A DNA stretch of 59,990 nucleotides, counting the filler, from Dugesia japonica (lineage: Eukaryota): NCBI GenBank assembly GCA_001938525.1. It is 5 parts of 5 records of this genome, joined end to end, with 100 filler letters (N's around TTAATTAATTAA, not from the genome) between each part and the next. Parts side by side here need not be neighbours in the genome. Positions count along the whole stretch, not along the records: positions 1 to 9,922 come from MQRL01643449.1; 4 more parts are not named here. One strand, 5' to 3'. How positions within the stretch are numbered: position 1 is the stretch's first letter; each line of letters starts with the position of its first letter. The notes beneath the pieces were generated by a model, which was given only the letters and a program-made list of their open reading frames with translations, made no database searches and was not told the origin of the DNA. A program made the position numbers and the translations under genes. This document shows, in pieces, positions 1-9,922 of this stretch.

Positions 1-2
1 AT

Positions 3-1367
3 CAATCAGAAATATCTTATTGCATTTGGTGCACGAGAAATAAAGAATTTTTGCCATGCGTGAAATGTAACTATAAATGCTGTTACGATTGTATCACTAA
101 CAATCTAGGAACGCTCTATATCGACTCTGTCAATGAAAAGAATTGGTTGTGTTTTGTTTGTGATTGTGATCCAATTGAAAATCTACAAAAAGAATATTAT
201 AAGTTCAGTAAATTATTGAGAAATGAAATCGAACCATTGGCTCCCGAAGGAGCTGCGTCGTCTATTGATATAACATCTCCCTATATTCTTGTTGACGAAT
301 CTGAAGATTCATATAAAAAATTTAGTCGAAAAACTGCTATAGGATCTCAAGATTTGGATTCAATTTTGAATATGTATGAAAAGCAAATCAAAGCATCATT
401 GGAACTGGAAGATGCCAATATTCCGTCAATATTGTCTGAAATCAACTCAATTAAAACTGAGCATTTATCCACAGCGATTCACTCAATAAAAAAATGTTTA
501 TCAGCATTTGCTAGTGACCTCACCAATCTTGAATCGCGAGTTTCTCAGGCCGTAACAACAAATAACCAATTGACATTGAACAAACTCACGTCATTATTAC
601 GTATTCTAATTCAGCATCATATTTTCAATAGGCTGTCTCACCCTAAAGCAAGAATTCAAGATGATTTGAAGGCTTCATCAAATGATAAATCGTCATCGAA
701 TAATGCCATAGTAATTCCACCAATCAACAATAATAACAATAACAACCAGAAAATGGTGTTTATTGTTGATCCGAAATACTTGAAAAATACGAAAAGGAAA
801 TTACCTGTAGAGAAATTAGCTGTGGATTTAAACAACGGAAAATCTAAAGATTTCACAATCAGTGATCTATCGAGAATAATCAATACTCTTGCTAGCAATG
901 GTGGCAATAAGCGTTCTATGAGTGTCGATGGAAATTCGTCTCAAGGATTTGTTGCTAAACGAGCGAGATTTTATGAGGAAGAATCGAGGGAATCTGTGGA
1001 GTTGAAAGCTGAACGTCAAAGAAGATCTCTGATAACTCCGTCTTGGTTGAGTGATTTCAAAGTGGAAAAAGAAAACGATAACATCCCATTGGAAGAGAAA
1101 GATAGTGTTGCTGGGGACGATGATGATGATGATGAATGGACAGATTATCGGTTCAAAGACGATTTAGCTCCCCGAAAACGAGGAAGGCCTCCAAAATTTC
1201 CGAAATCTAGTCCGCCTGAAATGAATAATGATTTGATGAGTGATTTACCGAAAAGAGCTCGAGGAAGACCGAAAAAAAATCTTAATCTAAATGATAAACA
1301 ACCCCGATTTTATATTCCAAAATTGAATGGCGATGCATTGCTAACAATTGATAACAATGATATTTAG
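3..1367 (+). CDS. ADD (ATRX-DNMT3-DNMT3L)-type PHD finger + AT-hook chromatin protein, paralogue 1 (5' end outside window)
   Basis: Frame is open from base 3: YCIWCTRNKEFLPCVKCNYKCCYDCITNNLG...NWLCFVCDCDPI matches the ATRX ADD PHD pattern (CxWC...CxxC...CxxCIxxNLG...WxCxxCxxxP). C-terminal RKRGRPPK and RARGRPKK are AT-hooks. Stop TAG at 1365-1367. The ORF-track start at 51 is an internal TTG. Confidence 0.85.
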   Translation, partial: QSEISYCIWCTRNKEFLPCVKCNYKCCYDCITNNLGTLYIDSVNEKNWLCFVCDCDPIENLQKEYYKFSKLLRNEIEPLAPEGAASSIDITSPYILVDESEDSYKKFSRKTAIGSQDLDSILNMYEKQIKASLELEDANIPSILSEINSIKTEHLSTAIHSIKKCLSAFASDLTNLESRVSQAVTTNNQLTLNKLTSLLRILIQHHIFNRLSHPKARIQDDLKASSNDKSSSNNAIVIPPINNNNNNNQKMVFIVDPKYLKNTKRKLPVEKLAVDLNNGKSKDFTISDLSRIINTLASNGGNKRSMSVDGNSSQGFVAKRARFYEEESRESVELKAERQRRSLITPSWLSDFKVEKENDNIPLEEKDSVAGDDDDDDEWTDYRFKDDLAPRKRGRPPKFPKSSPPEMNNDLMSDLPKRARGRPKKNLNLNDKQPRFYIPKLNGDALLTIDNNDI

Positions 1368-2739
1368 ATCTTTTCCCATCACTTTTGTGTGTTATTCATT
1401 TATTATTAGTGAAATTGTGTTTGTGTGTGACCTTGTCTGTGTGTGTTTGTGTTTGTGTGTGATTACATCAAATTGTTTAATAATGGGATTGTATATATAC
1501 AAATCATATTTTATAGCATTTGTTATTCGATTTCTTTGAAAAAATTCTCAGTAAAGAGAAAAGTATTAACCATTCTCTTTATTTTATTGATTGACTCTAT
1601 TATAAAAACATGAAATGGAACGTCCATTTATTATGCAATATTAATGCTCCCATACATTTATTGGCCTTCATTATGGGTGCGTAGAAATTAGCATCTCTAT
1701 CTATGTTACTAAGCATACATAGAAATATTAGGTTTTAACATAATTAAGGACGCGTAATATTATTTGTTTCATGTTGCTATTTGTGCTATCTCTTTGATAC
1801 CAATGGAGCAAGTTCTTGTATTTTTTCTTGAGTCGGCTTCATTATGAAATGGAAATGAAAATANNNNNNNNNNNNNNNNNNNNNNNNNNNNNNNNNNNNN
1901 NNNNNNNNNNNNNNNNNNNAAGGTCTAAAATGCTGTGATTTTACTGGTGTATAGACTGTCCTTTGTAATAGAAGCTGCGAAAATTTAAACAGTTAGGTGT
2001 ATTGGAAGTGTGTGACCATCGCTAAGACAGAAGTGTCGCGAAAGGAAGCCCCTCAAGAGTGAACTGGGATAATTAAGCTTTTGAAAGATAACGGTTAACA
2101 AGATCAGTAAGACATGTCGAAAATGTGCATCCAGCTTAAGCACCGAATTTCGCTAGGATTATCACATTTTTCTCTTTGAGGAACTTCTTGCGTCTACGTC
2201 AGTTGAGAACATAAAATATAGTCAAAGCCATCATTTGTGAGTATTTAGAGTCGAAAGATCGAGTTTTTGTGACTAGTATTACTCCGCTTCTGAAACAGTG
2301 CTTCCAAGTACACAACAATGGTGGAGGATACCTGATATTTTGTGTTTAAATGAATTTTTGCTACAACCTATTATTTGAAAATTCTGCATCAAAATAATTT
2401 TTTATAAAATAAGCTAAATATAGTTTTTAGATNNNNNNNNNNNNNNNNNNNNNNNNNNNNNNNNNNNNNNNNNNNNNNNNNNNNNNNNNNNNNNNNNNNN
2501 NNNNNNNNNNNNNNNNNNNNNNNNNNNNNNNNNNNNNNNNNNNNNNNNNNNNNNNNNNNNNNNNNNNNNNNAAAAAATGTTCAACACAAGAAAGGTCTAA
2601 AATGCTGTGATTTTACTGGTGTATAGACTGTCCTTTGTAATAGAAAATTTCTAGAGTTTTTGAACTTTCGTTTCTCAAGTACTTTTCTAATCTCGATATG
2701 ACAGAAATAGAATGGGTTATACACTTATTCATGGAGTTT

Positions 2740-3015
2740 GAAGCTGAAAATCTTGAAAAGTAGCTTGAAGAGTATTTTAGAAAATTATTTAGTTTTGAAA
2801 GGAATCGTTGCTGAAAACGAACTTCNTGAGTTTTGGACATCTTCAGACATCAAATTTCCTCTATTGAGCAACAAAGCAAGAGAGTTCTTTTACCATTTGG
2901 AATTCTTTGCGAGCATGGATTTTTAGAGCTCACAGAAATAAAGTCAAAGAAGCGTGAGATGCTTTAAATGGTTGACGAGGAACTGCGTGTTTGTTTTTAT
3001 GGGATTGCTCCTAGA
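2740..3015 (+). mobile_element. Decayed hAT (Buster/ZBED5/FAM200-like) transposase C-terminal dimerisation region
   Basis: FWTSSDIKFPLLSNKARE..LPFG..LTEIKSKKRE..MVDEELRVC across frameshifts resembles the Buster-type hAT C-terminus. Confidence 0.7.
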
Positions 3016-4030
3016 GAAACAATAAAATTTCAAGATGAATTGCAGAAACCAATCAATATGCTTTTAAATTTTTGCTTTTTCTAAATGGTTAATTCATATT
3101 TTATTTTTACTCAAAAACTGTATTTTCTGATTATTTGTTTTTTATTCTTTTGGTTCCTACTTTCTGGCTACTCATCTTAATTTAACAGAATATCTTCAAG
3201 TTTATTCTCGTCTTTTTTGCTTTGTTCACATATATTCTTCGAGATCCGGATACATGCATACCTTCACGTGTAAGTGTTATTTCGATGCATTTTGCTTGAC
3301 TGAGACAATTTATTTCCGTGGTCGGAATAGATGATTTTATGCAGTATTATGACTTTTTTCGACTATTTATTTATAGTTTACAATTTGGCTTTTGCATCTT
3401 AATTGATTTTATATTCACTCATTTTATTTGGTTCGCTGTGATTCTAATTTTTTTATCATCTTATTTTATTCCATTTATTTTTATATAATCCTTCTTTTAA
3501 ATCAAATGTTTTATTTTAATTAGTTCTATTTTTATAAGGGACTATTTTTTATTAAGGTGCCAATTATACTCTTTCTTTGTTTTAATCCACTGATGATTTA
3601 GATTGTTATTTCCACGAATTATTTTTCTTTTGTTCGGGTTTACTGATTTATTCTTTTATTCTTCTTTTATATAGCAATTTCTGCTTACTTGGGATCTGTT
3701 TCATTTGAATTCCTATTCATCTTTATTGATAGATGGTTATGTGGCCCTCTGTTCTTTCTTACTTAATTAGTTGTTTACATAACAAATAGATTGTAAACAC
3801 TTCAACCATGTTATAAAAAACCTTTTCTACAGATTTACTTTAATTTTATAGCTAAAAATTAATTTAATGCCACCATTAATTTTCCCTTATTGATTAAGTA
3901 TCGGGAAACACTTGTGCTAGACCAGTTTACTATTCTTCACTATTCTCAAGTTTAAATAAAAAAAAGTAAATAAATGTGAAATTTAAAACGATCAGCATTA
4001 TATTTTGGTAAAATTAATTTTTATTACTTA

Positions 4031-4200
4031 CTAGTCATACTCGGCTACGCATTGCTGTGACTCAGTATAGTTGAATGAAACAGAAAAGAAAAGAAAATGA
4101 ATACGTTTCTAATATATTTAATTTTACAATGCTTGTGGATATGCAATATTTTTTGTTGTTCCTTTGGGCCAGATGGGCCATAAGATGATATAAAATTTAC
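4031..4200 (-). mobile_element. Helitron 3' end
   Basis: Minus strand encodes ...PKGTTKNIAYPQAL* (end of a Helitron Pif1 helicase). It is followed by a degenerate subterminal hairpin (GTCACAGCAATGCGTAGC) and terminal CTAG followed by T. Confidence 0.75.
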
Positions 4201-6354
4201 TATAGGATATTCGTATCTATGCACAGGTAATTTCTTCAGATTGTTATTCTGTTTGCACGATTATCTTACATCAACATTAAGGCATACAATGACGAAATTG
4301 GTTTTTAAGAATATTTTCCATAGAACTTAGCAGTACTTTGAAGGGAAAATATTACAAAGAGATAAATAATAAATTTTGGGATTTTTTGTAAAAAATAATA
4401 TCAACTCGTAAAATAACGCTTTATCAGAACATAGCAAATATTTCTATAAAAAGAGAATGTATTTATGCATGTATAAAAGCAATTTAAAAAATTGTTCTCA
4501 TTTATTTATAAGCGCAATATTTTTTTGTAATGAAATACGAAATTACGNAGTAATTCTCATTTCAGTACTGGTATTTCAAAATTGAAAAATCGACTTGTAT
4601 ACTAGAATTCCGTGATTGGACGTTCTAATCAACACTAGTTACAATAAAATAACATTTATTGACGATGGTTTATTTTCTATAGATAGCAAAATACTTGAGG
4701 AAATTAACAACAAGAGTGAAAACTCACTTTGGGTCAAATGGTAGGTCCGTTGTCCTAAAGATCGATGGTTTTAACAGTTTGCTTTCATGTTTTGAATTTA
4801 TTGAAGAATAGAATCAATACGTTTAAAGAGAGAGAACGAATTTGCAACATTACAACAGAATGATAACTAACATCATTAAGTCCTATTCATATAGAGTAGC
4901 TGAACTATTCAAAAATTAACGAATATTGTTGAAACAGAACTGGAATCCGAACGAAACTGATATGTCTTATTGTAAATACATGCTAATAATCAAGATTGGC
5001 TTCATCCACCAATCATCTGCAAATCAAAATAAGTTTTAATTTCCACTGATGGAATTGAACTAAGAAGATATTTGAAAACATTTTGGAAAGTCATCGTTTT
5101 TATATTCGGCTGAAAAGAAGAAAATAACTTCATTCGTACAGAGACGTAAGAAGGCATTTGTAAATGGGCACTTGTAATAGGTTCATTTATCAAAGATCTA
5201 CTCAGAAAATGAAGTGAAGCTTTCTTAATTTTATTCTGATAAAAATTTGTATTAATTTAATTATTTACCGAGTGTTCCCAAATCATTGCTGTGGTTCTGT
5301 GTTGATCAATAATGAAAAATACTGCTCGTAAAACGTAACTCCTTCAGNTTCCATATAATAATATTTTCGAATTTTGTTTAAAGATAAGCATAAAAATTTA
5401 CGAAAATTTTGATTGTCTAATAACACTTTCGATTAAATAATTTTTTTTATAATAAAAACAAACAATAACTCATACGAAGTGTAAGAATATGGGATAGACT
5501 TGGATTAATTCATAAATAAATTTCAAATCCATATGGCAATTGAGTAAGAAAAAAAATCTGTTAAAAAGGTGTCGTGAGCATCAAATAAATTACGTGTGCA
5601 AATGTTCTGTTCCCAAGGATAAATTATTACTGTGTGCAATCTGATATTTTATTACAATTTGTAATTATTGTTTGTATTAAAGATGAATTAATTATTGATT
5701 GCAAATTAATCAATGAAATTCTATCAACAGGTAATTAAATTACATTACCAAGAATAGACAAACGCAAATCCAAACCATTACAAATAAAGTTAAGATAATT
5801 TCAATTTTAATGGAGGATTAATACGAAATTTNAACCTAATTGATTTTGAGATTTATGGAAACTAAATTATGAAGAACATGGATAATTATTTAAAATTTCA
5901 GATTGTTAGTGTCTACGGAAATTGTTATGTAAATCATTTATTAGGAAAAAACAAATTTATCTGCCACGTTGAATTTTTAGAAAACTAATTTAAACAAATC
6001 TTTTCAAAAATTTAACCTTTTTAATTAATTAAACAATAAATTGTGGAAATAGAAATTTTTTGTATTAAATTAATTATTTAAATCAACAGAAAATGAATCA
6101 ATATCCAAAATGTAAAAAAGAAGAGTGTATGTCAATTAACATATTAAACAAATAGCCAATCATATCATTTCTTGAATCCGATTGAAATTCGAAATTTATT
6201 ATGAGAATCGAAATGAATTTTAAAAACATATTTACAAATTTAAAAAGCGAATACCGGGCAAAAATGTGAGCACAGAAAAACAATAACAAAATTGCAATAT
6301 CTATTACAAAACTAATCTATACTGTACAAAAGATGCCGATTATAAAGTTTATGA

Positions 6355-8016
6355 TTATTTTGAATCCGACATATCAGACGAATTGCGCAGATCTTCATGA
6401 GAACCGTTTGATGTTTCTCCAGTGTGGCCAACGAAATCGAAATATTTTCGAGGACGTCCGCGTTTCTTCTTGGGTTCATCTGAATCGTTGATGCTGTTGT
6501 TAAACGTTGGAGAAATACCCCGTTTCAATGGTTCACTTGTCGATAAACGTGGTCTTCCACGCACAGGAACAACGACTGTCGTATCGAAGGTCGGTTTGGG
6601 AATGATTACAGTTTTACTGAGTATCTTTGAGATATCGTCACTGAGAATGCTCTTTCTATTGGTTGGGATGATAAATTTCGCTGCAGGGAGAGACGTGCGT
6701 TCCCATGACCAGGTTTTGTGAGATGTTGGCTGTTTGATAATATCTTCATCATCGAGACAATCGAGAGATTTTTCACTGTTCTCCTTCAATACAAACGGTC
6801 TCTCATATTGAATTGGAGCTGGACTAACAAGATGAGAATTTTTGTTTCGATTGGTTATTGGAATAAACTTTTTCAGATCAGAATTATAATGACCTCCTTC
6901 ACTCATCGATTGACACGACGACAAATTATTGAAATCAAGATTAAATTCACAACTCGTTTCTTCTTTGATATCGATAGTATTTGTTCGAGAAAGACTCGAT
7001 TTGTCATTCATAATATTCGATTTGATGGGATTTATTTTCTTTTCTGCTGTTGTTTTTGTACTCAATTCTCCCCAGGACAACCTTTTCGGACTGAGTCGAG
7101 TTTCGAACGACTTTTTACCGAGTTTGGAAGAACTGGTGATATGGCGATGATTTGATTCCTCTTCGCTATCATCGATTGATTTGAAAACTGTTGTTGCCTG
7201 ACTCAAATCTGAATGGAGAGCATTGATTGGCGGAATTATGATGTTCGATTCGGATCTTAAACGCACACTTCTTCGTTCGATATCCGATGATCGTTTAGAA
7301 CGTTTCCGTTTTGATAATTGATTTTCTTTTGAAGGGGTACTGAACATTTCCGAGTTGAGATTCGGTGAATTCTTCATATCAAATTGTAATTGGATCTTAT
7401 TTAGTTGATCGATTTGAGAGGAAATCAATGATAACGATTGTACAGAAGGAATAACAATTCGTTTATCACATAGATTATTATCATCATCTTCTTTCGTTTC
7501 AACAATCTCAAAATTACTCGTCAATCTGTCTTCATCAGCCAAACATTCTGGAGATCTTTGTACGCGTTCATAATCGTTATTTTCAGGACTGTTTTTCGAT
7601 ATTTCCATTCGACTATGTTCCATTAAATACACATAATTATCTTCATTATTCAATGTGTTCATAGGCTCTTCATTAACAATACAATGCTGAGGTCGGCCTA
7701 ACCTCTTAAAAACGTGATGTTTCATAACGACTTTCATTAGAGGCATCAAAACGGTTTTTATATCATTAGTTCGATGTTCAGTTACCGCTCTATTAACCAT
7801 AGTTTCAATTTTTTGTACATCGTGTAACATAGAATAAATATTCATTTTTATCACATCAAATAATCGAGGCAACTTCTCATTATCAATTGCATCGATGTTT
7901 ATTAATAAATCATGAATTGAATTAGCCAATTTGTCATTACTAAATAATCCCTCATATCTATGAAGCATATCATACATTTCACGATCTTTTAAATAACCAT
8001 TATTATCATTAATAAC
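6355..8016 (-). CDS. ADD + AT-hook paralogue 2, exon 3 (helical region, disordered linker, AT-hooks); spliced product 642 aa
   Basis: Acceptor TTTTTCGTTAG joins in frame (VINDNNGYLKDREMYD...). The region is alignable to paralogue 1. AT-hooks PVRGRPR and KKRGRPRK. Stop TAA at 6355. Confidence 0.85.
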   Translation of the reverse strand, partial: VINDNNGYLKDREMYDMLHRYEGLFSNDKLANSIHDLLINIDAIDNEKLPRLFDVIKMNIYSMLHDVQKIETMVNRAVTEHRTNDIKTVLMPLMKVVMKHHVFKRLGRPQHCIVNEEPMNTLNNEDNYVYLMEHSRMEISKNSPENNDYERVQRSPECLADEDRLTSNFEIVETKEDDDNNLCDKRIVIPSVQSLSLISSQIDQLNKIQLQFDMKNSPNLNSEMFSTPSKENQLSKRKRSKRSSDIERRSVRLRSESNIIIPPINALHSDLSQATTVFKSIDDSEEESNHRHITSSSKLGKKSFETRLSPKRLSWGELSTKTTAEKKINPIKSNIMNDKSSLSRTNTIDIKEETSCEFNLDFNNLSSCQSMSEGGHYNSDLKKFIPITNRNKNSHLVSPAPIQYERPFVLKENSEKSLDCLDDEDIIKQPTSHKTWSWERTSLPAAKFIIPTNRKSILSDDISKILSKTVIIPKPTFDTTVVVPVRGRPRLSTSEPLKRGISPTFNNSINDSDEPKKKRGRPRKYFDFVGHTGETSNGSHEDLRNSSDMSDSK

Positions 8017-8062
8017 CTAACGAAAAACTTGAATAAATATTAAAGTCAATGTACTCACTTAC

Positions 8063-8230
8063 ATCTGTTAATTCAAAACAACCACAAATAAAACAAACAC
8101 ACTTCGATTCATCATTTAAATGACCTCCCTTAACACAAAATTTACAGAAGTTTCTTTTACAATTTTTGCAATGAATTAAAGCTCGACTTTCACACCAATA
8201 ACATAATCCAGACATATTGTTGTGATGAAG
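8063..8230 (-). CDS. ADD + AT-hook paralogue 2, exon 2 (PHD/ADD finger)
   Basis: LCYWCESRALIHCKNCKRNFCKFCVKGG...KCVCFICGC. Acceptor TTTCAG, donor GTAAGT, phase 0, then a 46-nt intron (8017-8062). Confidence 0.8.
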
Positions 8231-8304
8231 CTGAAATAAATTTTTAATAAAACAATAAAAGGAATCAAAAATTAGATAAAAAAATTTATTTAGCACATTC
8301 TAAC

Positions 8305-8403
8305 CTTTAACATTAATTTTAAAGTAGTAGTATTTTCGTTAGTAGAAAATAAATGGCTAAATTTCTCATTTAGATTCATTAAATCATCAAGCACATTTAC
8401 CAT
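8305..8403 (-). CDS. ADD + AT-hook paralogue 2, exon 1
   Basis: ATG at 8403 (first in-frame ATG after a TAA). Encodes MVNVLDD...KLMLK, ends AAG|GTTAGA, phase 0, then a 74-nt intron (8231-8304) ending TTTCAG. Confidence 0.65.
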
Positions 8404-8874
8404 TTGTAACACATAATAATATAATTTAGAGACTGATATTTAAAAAGTTAGAACGCATTGAATTATGTAAGGAAAATATTAAATACGACTTACAATTAAT
8501 ATTCTGAATTCGCTCTTAAGATAATGCAAATTTAAACAAAATTTAAAGTATTAAAATATTTACTTGTTTAAAATTTATAATTTTTAAATATTTAGAATTT
8601 TGTCATTAATAAACAACAGAATTTATTAATGTTTGTTTTTTCAATTTTTTAAATATTTTTTCCAAAATATGATCAAATTTATAATGAATTGTAATAAATA
8701 CTAATTACTTTACATACGTATACACAAATTTTAAATTAAAACAAACAACTTTGATGTTTAAATATGAAATTACAGAATAATTAAATAAAGCATGTAAAAT
8801 AAAAATATTTATTAATTCATCAAAAAACTCAATTTTTTAAAAGATTCATATATTGAATGCAAAAATGTCATGCA

Positions 8875-9114
8875 CTAAAATTGCTTCCTTCGTTTTCCAG
8901 CTTTCACAACGTATTTGTTTATTAGGTTCACAGTAATCCAAATAATAGTGAGAATACACCATCCAAATAATAAGCCAACTACACCATGAACATATTTACT
9001 TGAAACATTTGTGTCATAAAATATGTATTTGTTGGGTTCCTTATTGGCTTCTTCCAAAGTTATGGCTTGTGCTAAAGTAACGACGAGACTAAAAAGAAAA
9101 AGTGCACTATTCAT
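8875..9114 (-). CDS. Small (79 aa) type I membrane protein of unknown function
   Basis: Signal peptide MNSALFLFSLVVTLAQA, ~24-aa ectodomain, TM segment VHGVVGLLFGWCILTIIWITV and basic tail KAGKRRKQF. Intact single-exon ORF. Confidence 0.7.
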   Translation of the reverse strand: MNSALFLFSLVVTLAQAITLEEANKEPNKYIFYDTNVSSKYVHGVVGLLFGWCILTIIWITVNLINKYVVKAGKRRKQF

Positions 9115-9922
9115 ATTAAAAAAAATTTAACTAATTAATAATATCATAGATTATATATAAGTACACACATGAACTGGTGTGTTTTATTGGATCAATTGCT
9201 GTTGTTTTAACGTGTTTTTTCTTACGTAATTTTCAGTTTTCATGTAATAAATTAGGGAGCTTGAAGTTTGTTTATATTTACATACTTTTTACATTTGATA
9301 ATATCAGCTGATTTTTTAAATGTAATTTAACTCTATCGATAGATTTTTACATCATTTAAAAGATTAATTACAAAAAATTATAGATCGTCGATTTTAATTT
9401 TTTAAACTTAATTTTTATAAGATTGTTAATTTCACAACTTTCTTGGAATTATCTTTTTATTATTTAGATTTTTATAGAATTGTTTACTTTTAAATTTTTT
9501 AAGTTTTCGAAATAAACTACTATTTTTATTGTTCTTTTAATTAATATTTAATTAGTATTCTTGATTTCTTATATATAATGTATTTATAAACAAAAAATCG
9601 TAAAATAACAATTCGAAATATAAAAATAACCGTAAAAATCCGAAGAACTCAGAAAATACCGAAAAAATTTTCTTGATAAAAAAAATTGATAAAAACAAAA
9701 ATTAAATAAAATAAGCAATCTAAGAAAATTGTGAAACCATAAAATATAAAAACAATTTAGACCCAATTAATATATCCGGAAAATGACTAAAACAATATTG
9801 TTGTCTGTATTTCAAAAAACATTAATTACGTTATGGAATTATAGGACCACAACACAAAAATAAATGAATTTTAAACATGCGAACATATGGGTGCCAAGTA
9901 TCCAGTTTTGAACCGGACAGTC

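Follow-up and report, generated by a model that had tools for sequence, protein, structure and literature searches.

A described counterpart of the genes reported here is Drosophila dADD1 (CG8290), a helicase-less protein that bears an ATRX-type ADD domain, gained MADF domains, and works as a partner of dXNP in fly heterochromatin (PMC4249797). In mammals, the ATRX isoform ATRXt lacks the SWI/SNF domain but still localises to heterochromatin and binds the partners of ATRX (PMC13074095). In addition, SPBP (TCF20) and RAI1 each combine an AT-hook and an ePHD/ADD-like zinc module in one chromatin protein (PMC3799622). Here, we analyzed two genes, A and B, in a stretch of the Dugesia japonica genome (assembly GCA_001938525.1) comprising 59,990 nucleotides (nt), hereafter the window, in which five parts of five records are joined with fillers of 100 letters. 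Both genes are located in the first part (positions 1-9922, from MQRL01643449.1; hereafter the piece). We propose, with a probability of roughly 0.75, that A and B are old and diverged paralogues of the 5' part of flatworm ATRX, in which the PHD half of the ADD and a helical block were kept, SNF2 was lost, and AT-hooks were gained.

A and B are similar to dADD1 in that they are helicase-less and combine an ATRX-type ADD finger with an acquired DNA-binding module (PMC4249797). On the other hand, the ADD of dADD1 is entire, with its GATA-like finger, and the module added to the protein is MADF, not AT-hooks. Furthermore, dADD1 arose by gene fission and insect XNP is without an ADD, whereas an ATRX-type gene persists beside A and B in flatworms. 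At least, A and B are not orthologous to dADD1-type proteins, as they branch inside the N-terminal sequences of flatworm ATRX, next to the protein P0003 (see below for the details). ATRXt is an intron-retention isoform of the ATRX gene and has a complete ADD, whereas A and B are separate and highly diverged genes. SPBP and RAI1 are large vertebrate proteins, in which the ePHD/ADD-like domain is C-terminal and the AT-hook lies upstream, and neither was found among the relatives retrieved in this study; their likeness to A and B is architectural only.

The ATRX proteins of the flatworms Calicophoron daubneyi (CAL8068666.1), Clonorchis sinensis (KAG5451062.1), and Echinococcus canadensis (a model of 1935 amino acids) share with A and B the PHD half with eight Cys residues and the CxWC motif, and the helical block, in the same order. 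Unlike A and B, these proteins also possess a GATA-like finger (Pfam ADD_ATRX; its site in A is off the piece), an acidic loop, a long linker, and the SNF2 and Helicase_C domains. A (454 residues or more) and B (642 residues) have no helicase. Each of the two carries two RGRP AT-hooks, while none was seen by eye in the flatworm proteins P0003, P0004, and P0011. A preliminary description of the locus had suggested a lineage-specific family, and our literature searches on flatworm ATRX or on this architecture brought up no earlier account of the A/B genes or of a family of this kind.

The finger and the helical block shared with flatworm ATRX

A word-indexed search of 5.8 billion proteins yielded a single match for each of A and B. 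The match of A (P0001) showed an identity of 49% in BLASTP and of 54% in a global alignment of the longer open reading frame (ORF), and that of B (P0002) showed 45% in BLASTP and 47% in a global alignment of the full model. Both matches came from the Logan sample SRR33002330, of which contigs L001 (A-type) and L002 (B-type) represent unspliced genomic DNA. A profile of the finger and the helical block was then compared with 1.84 billion representative proteins and retrieved 79 matches, among which A- and B-type genes were found in one other species only. This result supports a narrow A/B subfamily and bears out the preliminary description, in which A and B were regarded as highly diverged and possibly lineage-restricted. 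After P0001 and P0002, the best matches to the finger plus block were P0003, 'Transcriptional regulator ATRX' of Echinococcus, ATRX models of Fasciola, and proteins of Macrostomum.

The finger of A, together with the helix that follows it, occupies 21..227 on the plus strand, and that of B is encoded by exon 2 on the minus strand (8063..8230), with its eight Cys across 8078-8203. Both follow the pattern CxWC-x7/8-CxxC-x4-CxxC-x13-19-CxxC, and in their alignment each of the eight Cys falls opposite its counterpart. Neither these Cys nor the Trp of CxWC varies among 13 sequences, in which nine flatworm ATRX proteins were aligned with A, B, and the orthologues of the two. When the A finger was searched against PDB by phmmer, the best match was the ATRX ADD (PHD sub-domain) with an E-value of 1.3e-4, while the B finger alone found no match. 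A profile of four A/B-type fingers matched human ATRX, in the PHD half of its ADD, with an E-value of 1.6e-9, and the same profile gave 0.024 for the next finger, the PHD of CHD4, and at least 0.1 for RING fingers. The B-type fingers alone were matched to the profile of ATRX-type fingers by hhalign with a probability of 95% and an E-value of 2.6e-8.

The structural comparisons of gene A were in agreement with these searches. In the AlphaFold2 (AF2) model of residues 1-240, the finger and the following helix had a predicted local distance difference test (pLDDT) score of ~90. The top nine Foldseek hits of this model in PDB were all the ATRX ADD, followed by the ADD of DNMT3L, DNMT3A, and DNMT3B and then by ordinary PHD fingers, and VIA-align, which does not depend on Foldseek, also placed the ATRX ADD at the top (2lbm; Z of 7.8 over 81 residues, ATRX 214-296). 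The best structural match of the A finger in ESM Atlas was an arthropod ADD_ATRX cluster; a feature search with gene A in the same resource gave a weak lead. Thus, the ADD-type fold first assigned to the finger from the sequence is upheld by the model of gene A, which finds the ATRX ADD before anything else. The B finger modelled alone had a low pLDDT of 67 and matched RING about as well as ADD, in a non-specific manner. Pfam called neither ADD nor PHD in the two proteins and gave weak B-box matches for B. Altogether, the data support the A and B fingers as ATRX-ADD-type PHD fingers that correspond to the PHD half of the ADD only.

The helical block of A is encoded by 348..692 on the plus strand (residues 116-230, predicted helices), and that of B by ~7633-7989 on the minus strand, within exon 3. 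The two blocks share 32% identity over 79 amino acids with an E-value of 4e-8, and pLDDT exceeded 90 for residues 140-230 of A. A local hidden Markov model of the block detected it 100-200 residues after the ADD in SNF2-bearing ATRX proteins of flatworms. The block was found in the full-length ATRX of Calicophoron, Paragonimus, Opisthorchis, and Clonorchis, as well as in a truncated model of Heterobilharzia and the model of E. canadensis with 1935 amino acids, all with SNF2, and it was also detected in Macrostomum. The flatworm ATRX proteins with the block are P0007, P0009, P0010, P0056, P0082, P0011, and P0073. Within the hit set, no block was detected in ATRX of fish or a priapulid, or in the stand-alone ADD proteins of insects. 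The block has no Pfam family and no sequence relative in PDB, and by structure VIA-align found generic helical bundles with a Z of 6.8 or lower. The preliminary description had pointed out a helical region shared between A and B, for which the homology stands, but on sequence grounds the block is not private to the two genes and represents an unannotated module of flatworm ATRX, to which the block of A is homologous. Two independent modules, the finger and the block, thus point to flatworm ATRX, in which their order is the same.

Across the ATRX proteins of Platyhelminthes, the module comprises ~110-130 residues after the ADD and displays the motif ILxxIxSV ... C..F..DI..LE ... F.S.YR.H.F.RL. 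In E. granulosus and E. multilocularis, the ATRX models (P0080 and P0081) comprise 504-518 amino acids and no helicase, while the E. canadensis model (P0082; 1935 amino acids with SNF2 and Helicase_C) belongs to the same 90%-identity cluster. The short Echinococcus models are probably split annotations.

Gene models, AT-hooks, and C-termini

Gene A comprises 454 codons plus TAG (1365-1367) in a single open frame at 3..1367 on the plus strand, of which the 5' end is cut by the edge of the piece. Six residues are visible before the first Cys, and the true start is off the piece. The frame encodes, in this order, the C4C4 finger, the helical block, a disordered tail, two RGRP AT-hooks, and the stop. 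Gene A and contig L001 are 54% identical and have a similar C-terminal end. Because L001 bears a splice acceptor 40 nt 5' of the first Cys codon, the A-type genes possess at least one upstream exon.

Gene B was modelled on the minus strand as an intact frame of 642 codons in three exons, separated by introns of 74 and 46 nt, with GT..AG borders and all in phase 0. Exon 1 (8305..8403) comprises 33 codons from ATG, exon 2 (8063..8230) 56 codons including the shortened ADD-type PHD finger, and exon 3 (6355..8016) 553 codons plus TAA, which encode the helical block, a disordered tail, and two AT-hooks. L002 shares the same three-exon layout with gene B, and exon 1 is kept at L002:108-203 with a DLMxLNEKF motif and the GT donor; there is no Cys in exon 1 of either. 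At an identity of 47%, B and P0002/L002 share islands of conserved sequence and end alike at the C-terminus. Among the 31-mers sampled from gene B, a share of 0.89-0.92 was held by 14 small runs of five studies, and 0.98-1.00 by DNA-like runs. By arithmetic, an mRNA of gene B without both modelled introns is expected to hold 1839/2019 = 0.91. Gene B is thus likely spliced and expressed, as the 31-mer shares fit this view albeit they are no proof.

In gene A, AT-hook 1 (PRKRGRPPKFPK) is encoded by 1167..1202 (RGRP core at 1179-1190) and AT-hook 2 (PKRARGRPKKN) by 1248..1280 (core at 1260-1271; Pfam AT_hook, 13.2 bits), both on the plus strand and kept in L001. In gene B, the core of AT-hook 1 (PVRGRPRLS) is at 6550..6561 and that of AT-hook 2 (PKKKRGRPRKYF; Pfam AT_hook, 14.9 bits) at 6451..6462, both on the minus strand and identical in L002. 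The AT-hooks are called on the level of motif, since their scores are below the Pfam cut-off of 17.4 bits. All of the four RGRP cores are near the C-termini, flanked by Lys or Arg, and kept in the orthologues despite overall identities of 47-54%. The AT-hook pairs of A and B matched each other with an E-value of 4e-4. The layout in the preliminary description (an ADD-type finger, a helical region, a linker, two AT-hooks, and a stop) agrees with the gene models and motifs, except that the finger is the PHD half and not a whole ADD.

We conclude that A and B end without a helicase or a methyltransferase, as claimed previously, and this is supported by the stop codons, the C-termini conserved in the orthologues, and tBLASTn. 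In the last ~80 nt of gene A, from the conserved PKLNG motif to the stop, there is no GT dinucleotide and hence no splice donor by which the stop could be bypassed. Pfam detected neither SNF2 ATPase nor Helicase_C in A and B. When the piece was subjected to tBLASTn with five SNF2-bearing ATRX models of flatworms, only the finger and block segments were found and no SNF2 segment. Furthermore, with the two genes facing each other, the spacer as scaffolded cannot accommodate downstream exons of either. A SNF2-like tBLASTn match at 2789-2887 (E-value of 0.01 over 33 amino acids, from ten long queries and a tiny database) was dismissed as chance, and a second weak match was on the opposite strand and not collinear.

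Origin of A and B and alternative explanations

The sample SRR33002330 contains a third gene fragment, which is of ATRX type (L004, P0005) and a 65%-identical orthologue of the block region of P0003. Because L001, L002, and L004 are all from this sample, the species in question has ATRX-type, A-type, and B-type genes. In P0003 (730 amino acids; UniParc only), the block comes after a complete ADD, of which the GATA-like part is matched by Pfam ADD_ATRX. At its C-terminus (residues 661-726), P0003 repeats its ADD PHD finger in nearly identical form, which is most likely an artefact of the draft assembly or the gene model.

We analyzed an alignment of 218 columns covering the finger and the block, and the tree was rooted on Macrostomum. 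A grouped with L001 (support of 95/95) and B with L002 (100/100), and the two pairs were joined with 99/96. The A/B clade was sister to P0003 with 97/92, and the clade of A/B and P0003 was in turn sister to the ATRX of trematodes and cestodes. By its place on the tree, the source of A and B would be a flatworm that is neither fluke nor tapeworm, such as a monogenean or a free-living form like a triclad. The simplest reading of these sequences would be that the 5' region of ATRX was partially duplicated in flatworms of a lineage other than the flukes and tapeworms, and that a later duplication, before the split of the two sampled species, gave rise to A and B. An ATRX fission is not indicated, because the other flatworm ATRX proteins keep their ADD. 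Between the members of each orthologue pair, the tails have drifted apart except for the AT-hooks, several short islands, and the ends of the proteins. The invariant Cys, the kept intron positions, the AT-hooks, and the intact ORFs argue for purifying selection and against pseudogenes.

In the origin that we propose, A and B would have been copied from the 5' part of a flatworm ATRX gene, keeping the PHD half of the ADD and the flatworm-specific helical block and losing the SNF2 helicase and, in B, the GATA-like finger as well. Near its C-terminus, each paralogue would have acquired two AT-hooks. The products may be nuclear chromatin proteins tethered by the AT-hooks to AT-rich DNA in a genome of 70-80% AT, in which the finger and the block would present ATRX-like protein-binding surfaces. 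If so, A and B may serve as helicase-independent adaptors for, or competitors of, the partners of the ATRX N-terminus.

Several points weigh against this proposal. Both A and B are on long branches, so that long-branch attraction could have inflated the support for joining A with B and the two with P0003. The 5' end of gene A is off the piece, so that a GATA-like finger may still be present in A; its site would be beyond the edge of the piece and, in L001, beyond an intron. In L001, 'xEC' opens the exon 15 residues upstream of the first Cys of the PHD, and may be what is visible of a CxxC knuckle. We infer DNA binding by the AT-hooks, as well as any partner of the helical block. The expression and splicing of gene B were deduced from shares of 31-mer words.

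The preliminary description had regarded A and B as possible stand-alone histone readers that couple the H3 tail (K4me0, K9me3) to AT-rich DNA, possibly as a split-ATRX module for heterochromatin or silencing of transposable elements. The specific likeness of the finger to the ATRX ADD, the presence and conservation of the AT-hooks, and the precedent of dADD1, which as a stand-alone ADD protein has a role in heterochromatin (PMC4249797), speak for such a function, but we regard it as unlikely. In human ATRX, Tyr203 from the GATA-like part forms the K9me3 pocket, and the 6D/E mutant of the acidic loop (D207, D208, D212, D214, D217, and E218) abolishes binding to H3K9me3 (PMC12900699). Gene B has no GATA-like finger, as exon 1 of both B and L002 is Cys-free and tBLASTn found no GATA-like segment in the piece. 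Ahead of the first PHD Cys, the acidic loop of flatworm ATRX proteins reads D-x-D-G-K-D-E-N-C, like SDGMDEQC of human ATRX. This D/E-rich loop is replaced in A, L001, B, and L002, with QSEISY in A, LVGDT in L001, and HNNMSGL in B at the position. The counterpart of human Glu252 is Tyr in A. The B finger also has a 10-residue deletion of the NLGRxxLxxI (NLGR) loop in the hhalign alignment and has neither a Trp ahead of the last CxxC nor the C-terminal helix of the ADD, as exon 2 ends five residues past the last Cys. The helix is present in A (residues 56-75, pLDDT of ~90, within the part aligned to ATRX 214-296). The loss of the acidic loop and, in B, of the GATA-like finger make ATRX-style reading of H3K4me0/K9me3 unlikely; judged by these residues, it appears unlikely for B and unsupported for A. 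As to the split of ATRX, the sister species has a separate ATRX-type gene fragment, and the full-length ATRX proteins of other flatworms keep the ADD, the block, and SNF2, so that this part of the claim was abandoned.

It is quite improbable that A is the 5' part of a real ATRX gene, of which the helicase exons are elsewhere or were lost by mis-scaffolding, with B as a decaying duplicate. The contig of A (1-1863) is joined to the rest only via N gaps, and short 'ATRX' models that are probably split do exist in Echinococcus. Nevertheless, the frame of A stops after a tail that L001 shares, its last ~80 nt are free of GT donors, A and L001 group with B and not with the ATRX-type P0003 and P0005, and the sister species possesses an ATRX-type gene fragment in addition to the orthologue of A. 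The intact frame of 642 codons, the eight invariant Cys, the conserved introns, and the 31-mer share in the 14 small runs, which is that expected of a spliced mRNA, are all at odds with decay of B. A chance likeness to ADD, in which the finger would be a cross-braced zinc finger of a generic kind (a RING, a B-box, or an ordinary PHD) and A and B an unrelated lineage-specific family with AT-hooks, is very improbable. Such a view could draw on the missing Pfam calls for ADD and PHD, the weak B-box matches of B, and the B finger that, modelled alone, resembled RING about as much as ADD. It is contradicted by the finger and the block, which both point to flatworm ATRX in the same order, as well as by the profile match to ATRX (E-value of 1.6e-9 against 0.02 or worse elsewhere) and the hhalign probability of 95% for the B-type fingers.

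Surroundings of the genes and meaning of the A/B pair

The piece is AT-rich with a GC content of 20-39%, which peaks in the two coding regions. Genes A (plus strand) and B (minus strand) are convergent, and their stop codons are ~5 kb apart as scaffolded. The spacer between the stop codons (1368..6354; no strand assigned) is AT-rich, comprises 4987 nt, and contains both N gaps (1864-1919 and 2433-2571), which are ~500 nt or more past the stop of gene A and 3.8 kb from that of gene B. As the gaps are outside both coding regions, neither reading frame crosses a gap. An exact direct repeat of 54 nt starts after each gap, or 21 nt on in the second case (1920-1973 = 2592-2645), and for this reason the distance of 5 kb and, strictly, even the placing of A next to B are only as reliable as the scaffold. 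Thus, the tail-to-tail order reported previously was observed, while the distance and the adjacency rest on the scaffold. The stretch between the two gaps may represent redundant scaffolding or an alternative haplotype.

The spacer holds no ORF of more than 75 amino acids, and tBLASTn revealed no ATRX-like coding segment in it. Rfam and tRNA scans of 1-8600 returned no family and no tRNA, and a tandem-repeat scan of the same positions returned nothing relevant. A TG-rich imperfect tandem array was seen at 1414-1464, just downstream of the stop of gene A (period of 16, 3.2 copies). An ORF at 2738-2926 was taken by eye as a remnant of a hAT dimerisation domain, and was dropped as Pfam gave no support. 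On the same strand as gene B and 470 nt upstream of it, a 79-codon ORF (8875-9114, minus strand) begins with hydrophobic residues, ends in a basic tail, and has a single predicted membrane span. It belongs to no Pfam family and may be a small membrane-protein gene. Positions 8619-8655 were masked in the local BLAST of the piece. The motif I-[VI]-I-P-P-I-N is found both in gene A (708-728) and in exon 3 of gene B (residues ~255-265) and is absent from the orthologues L001 and L002; either chance or local exchange between the paralogues could account for it.

If the partial duplication of ATRX proposed here is true, A and B would be the second independent case of the front end of ATRX, which binds histones and partners, becoming a separate protein with its own DNA-binding motif. 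Such a case would argue for a function of the ATRX N-terminus that is separable from remodelling, in line with the work on ATRXt and dADD1. As a tentative extension, flatworms outside the clade of flukes and tapeworms may have arrived independently at what gene fission yielded in insects, namely helicase-less proteins from the ATRX N-terminus with a new DNA-binding module (AT-hooks as against MADF), in which the block would engage a partner common to ATRX, and A and B would target or antagonise ATRX functions at AT-rich repeats. The idea of A and B reading H3-tail marks, albeit appealing, is unsupported and is corrected here. The unannotated helical module of ATRX, which extends from Macrostomum to flukes and tapeworms, is a concrete target for mapping interactions in parasites that matter to human and veterinary medicine.

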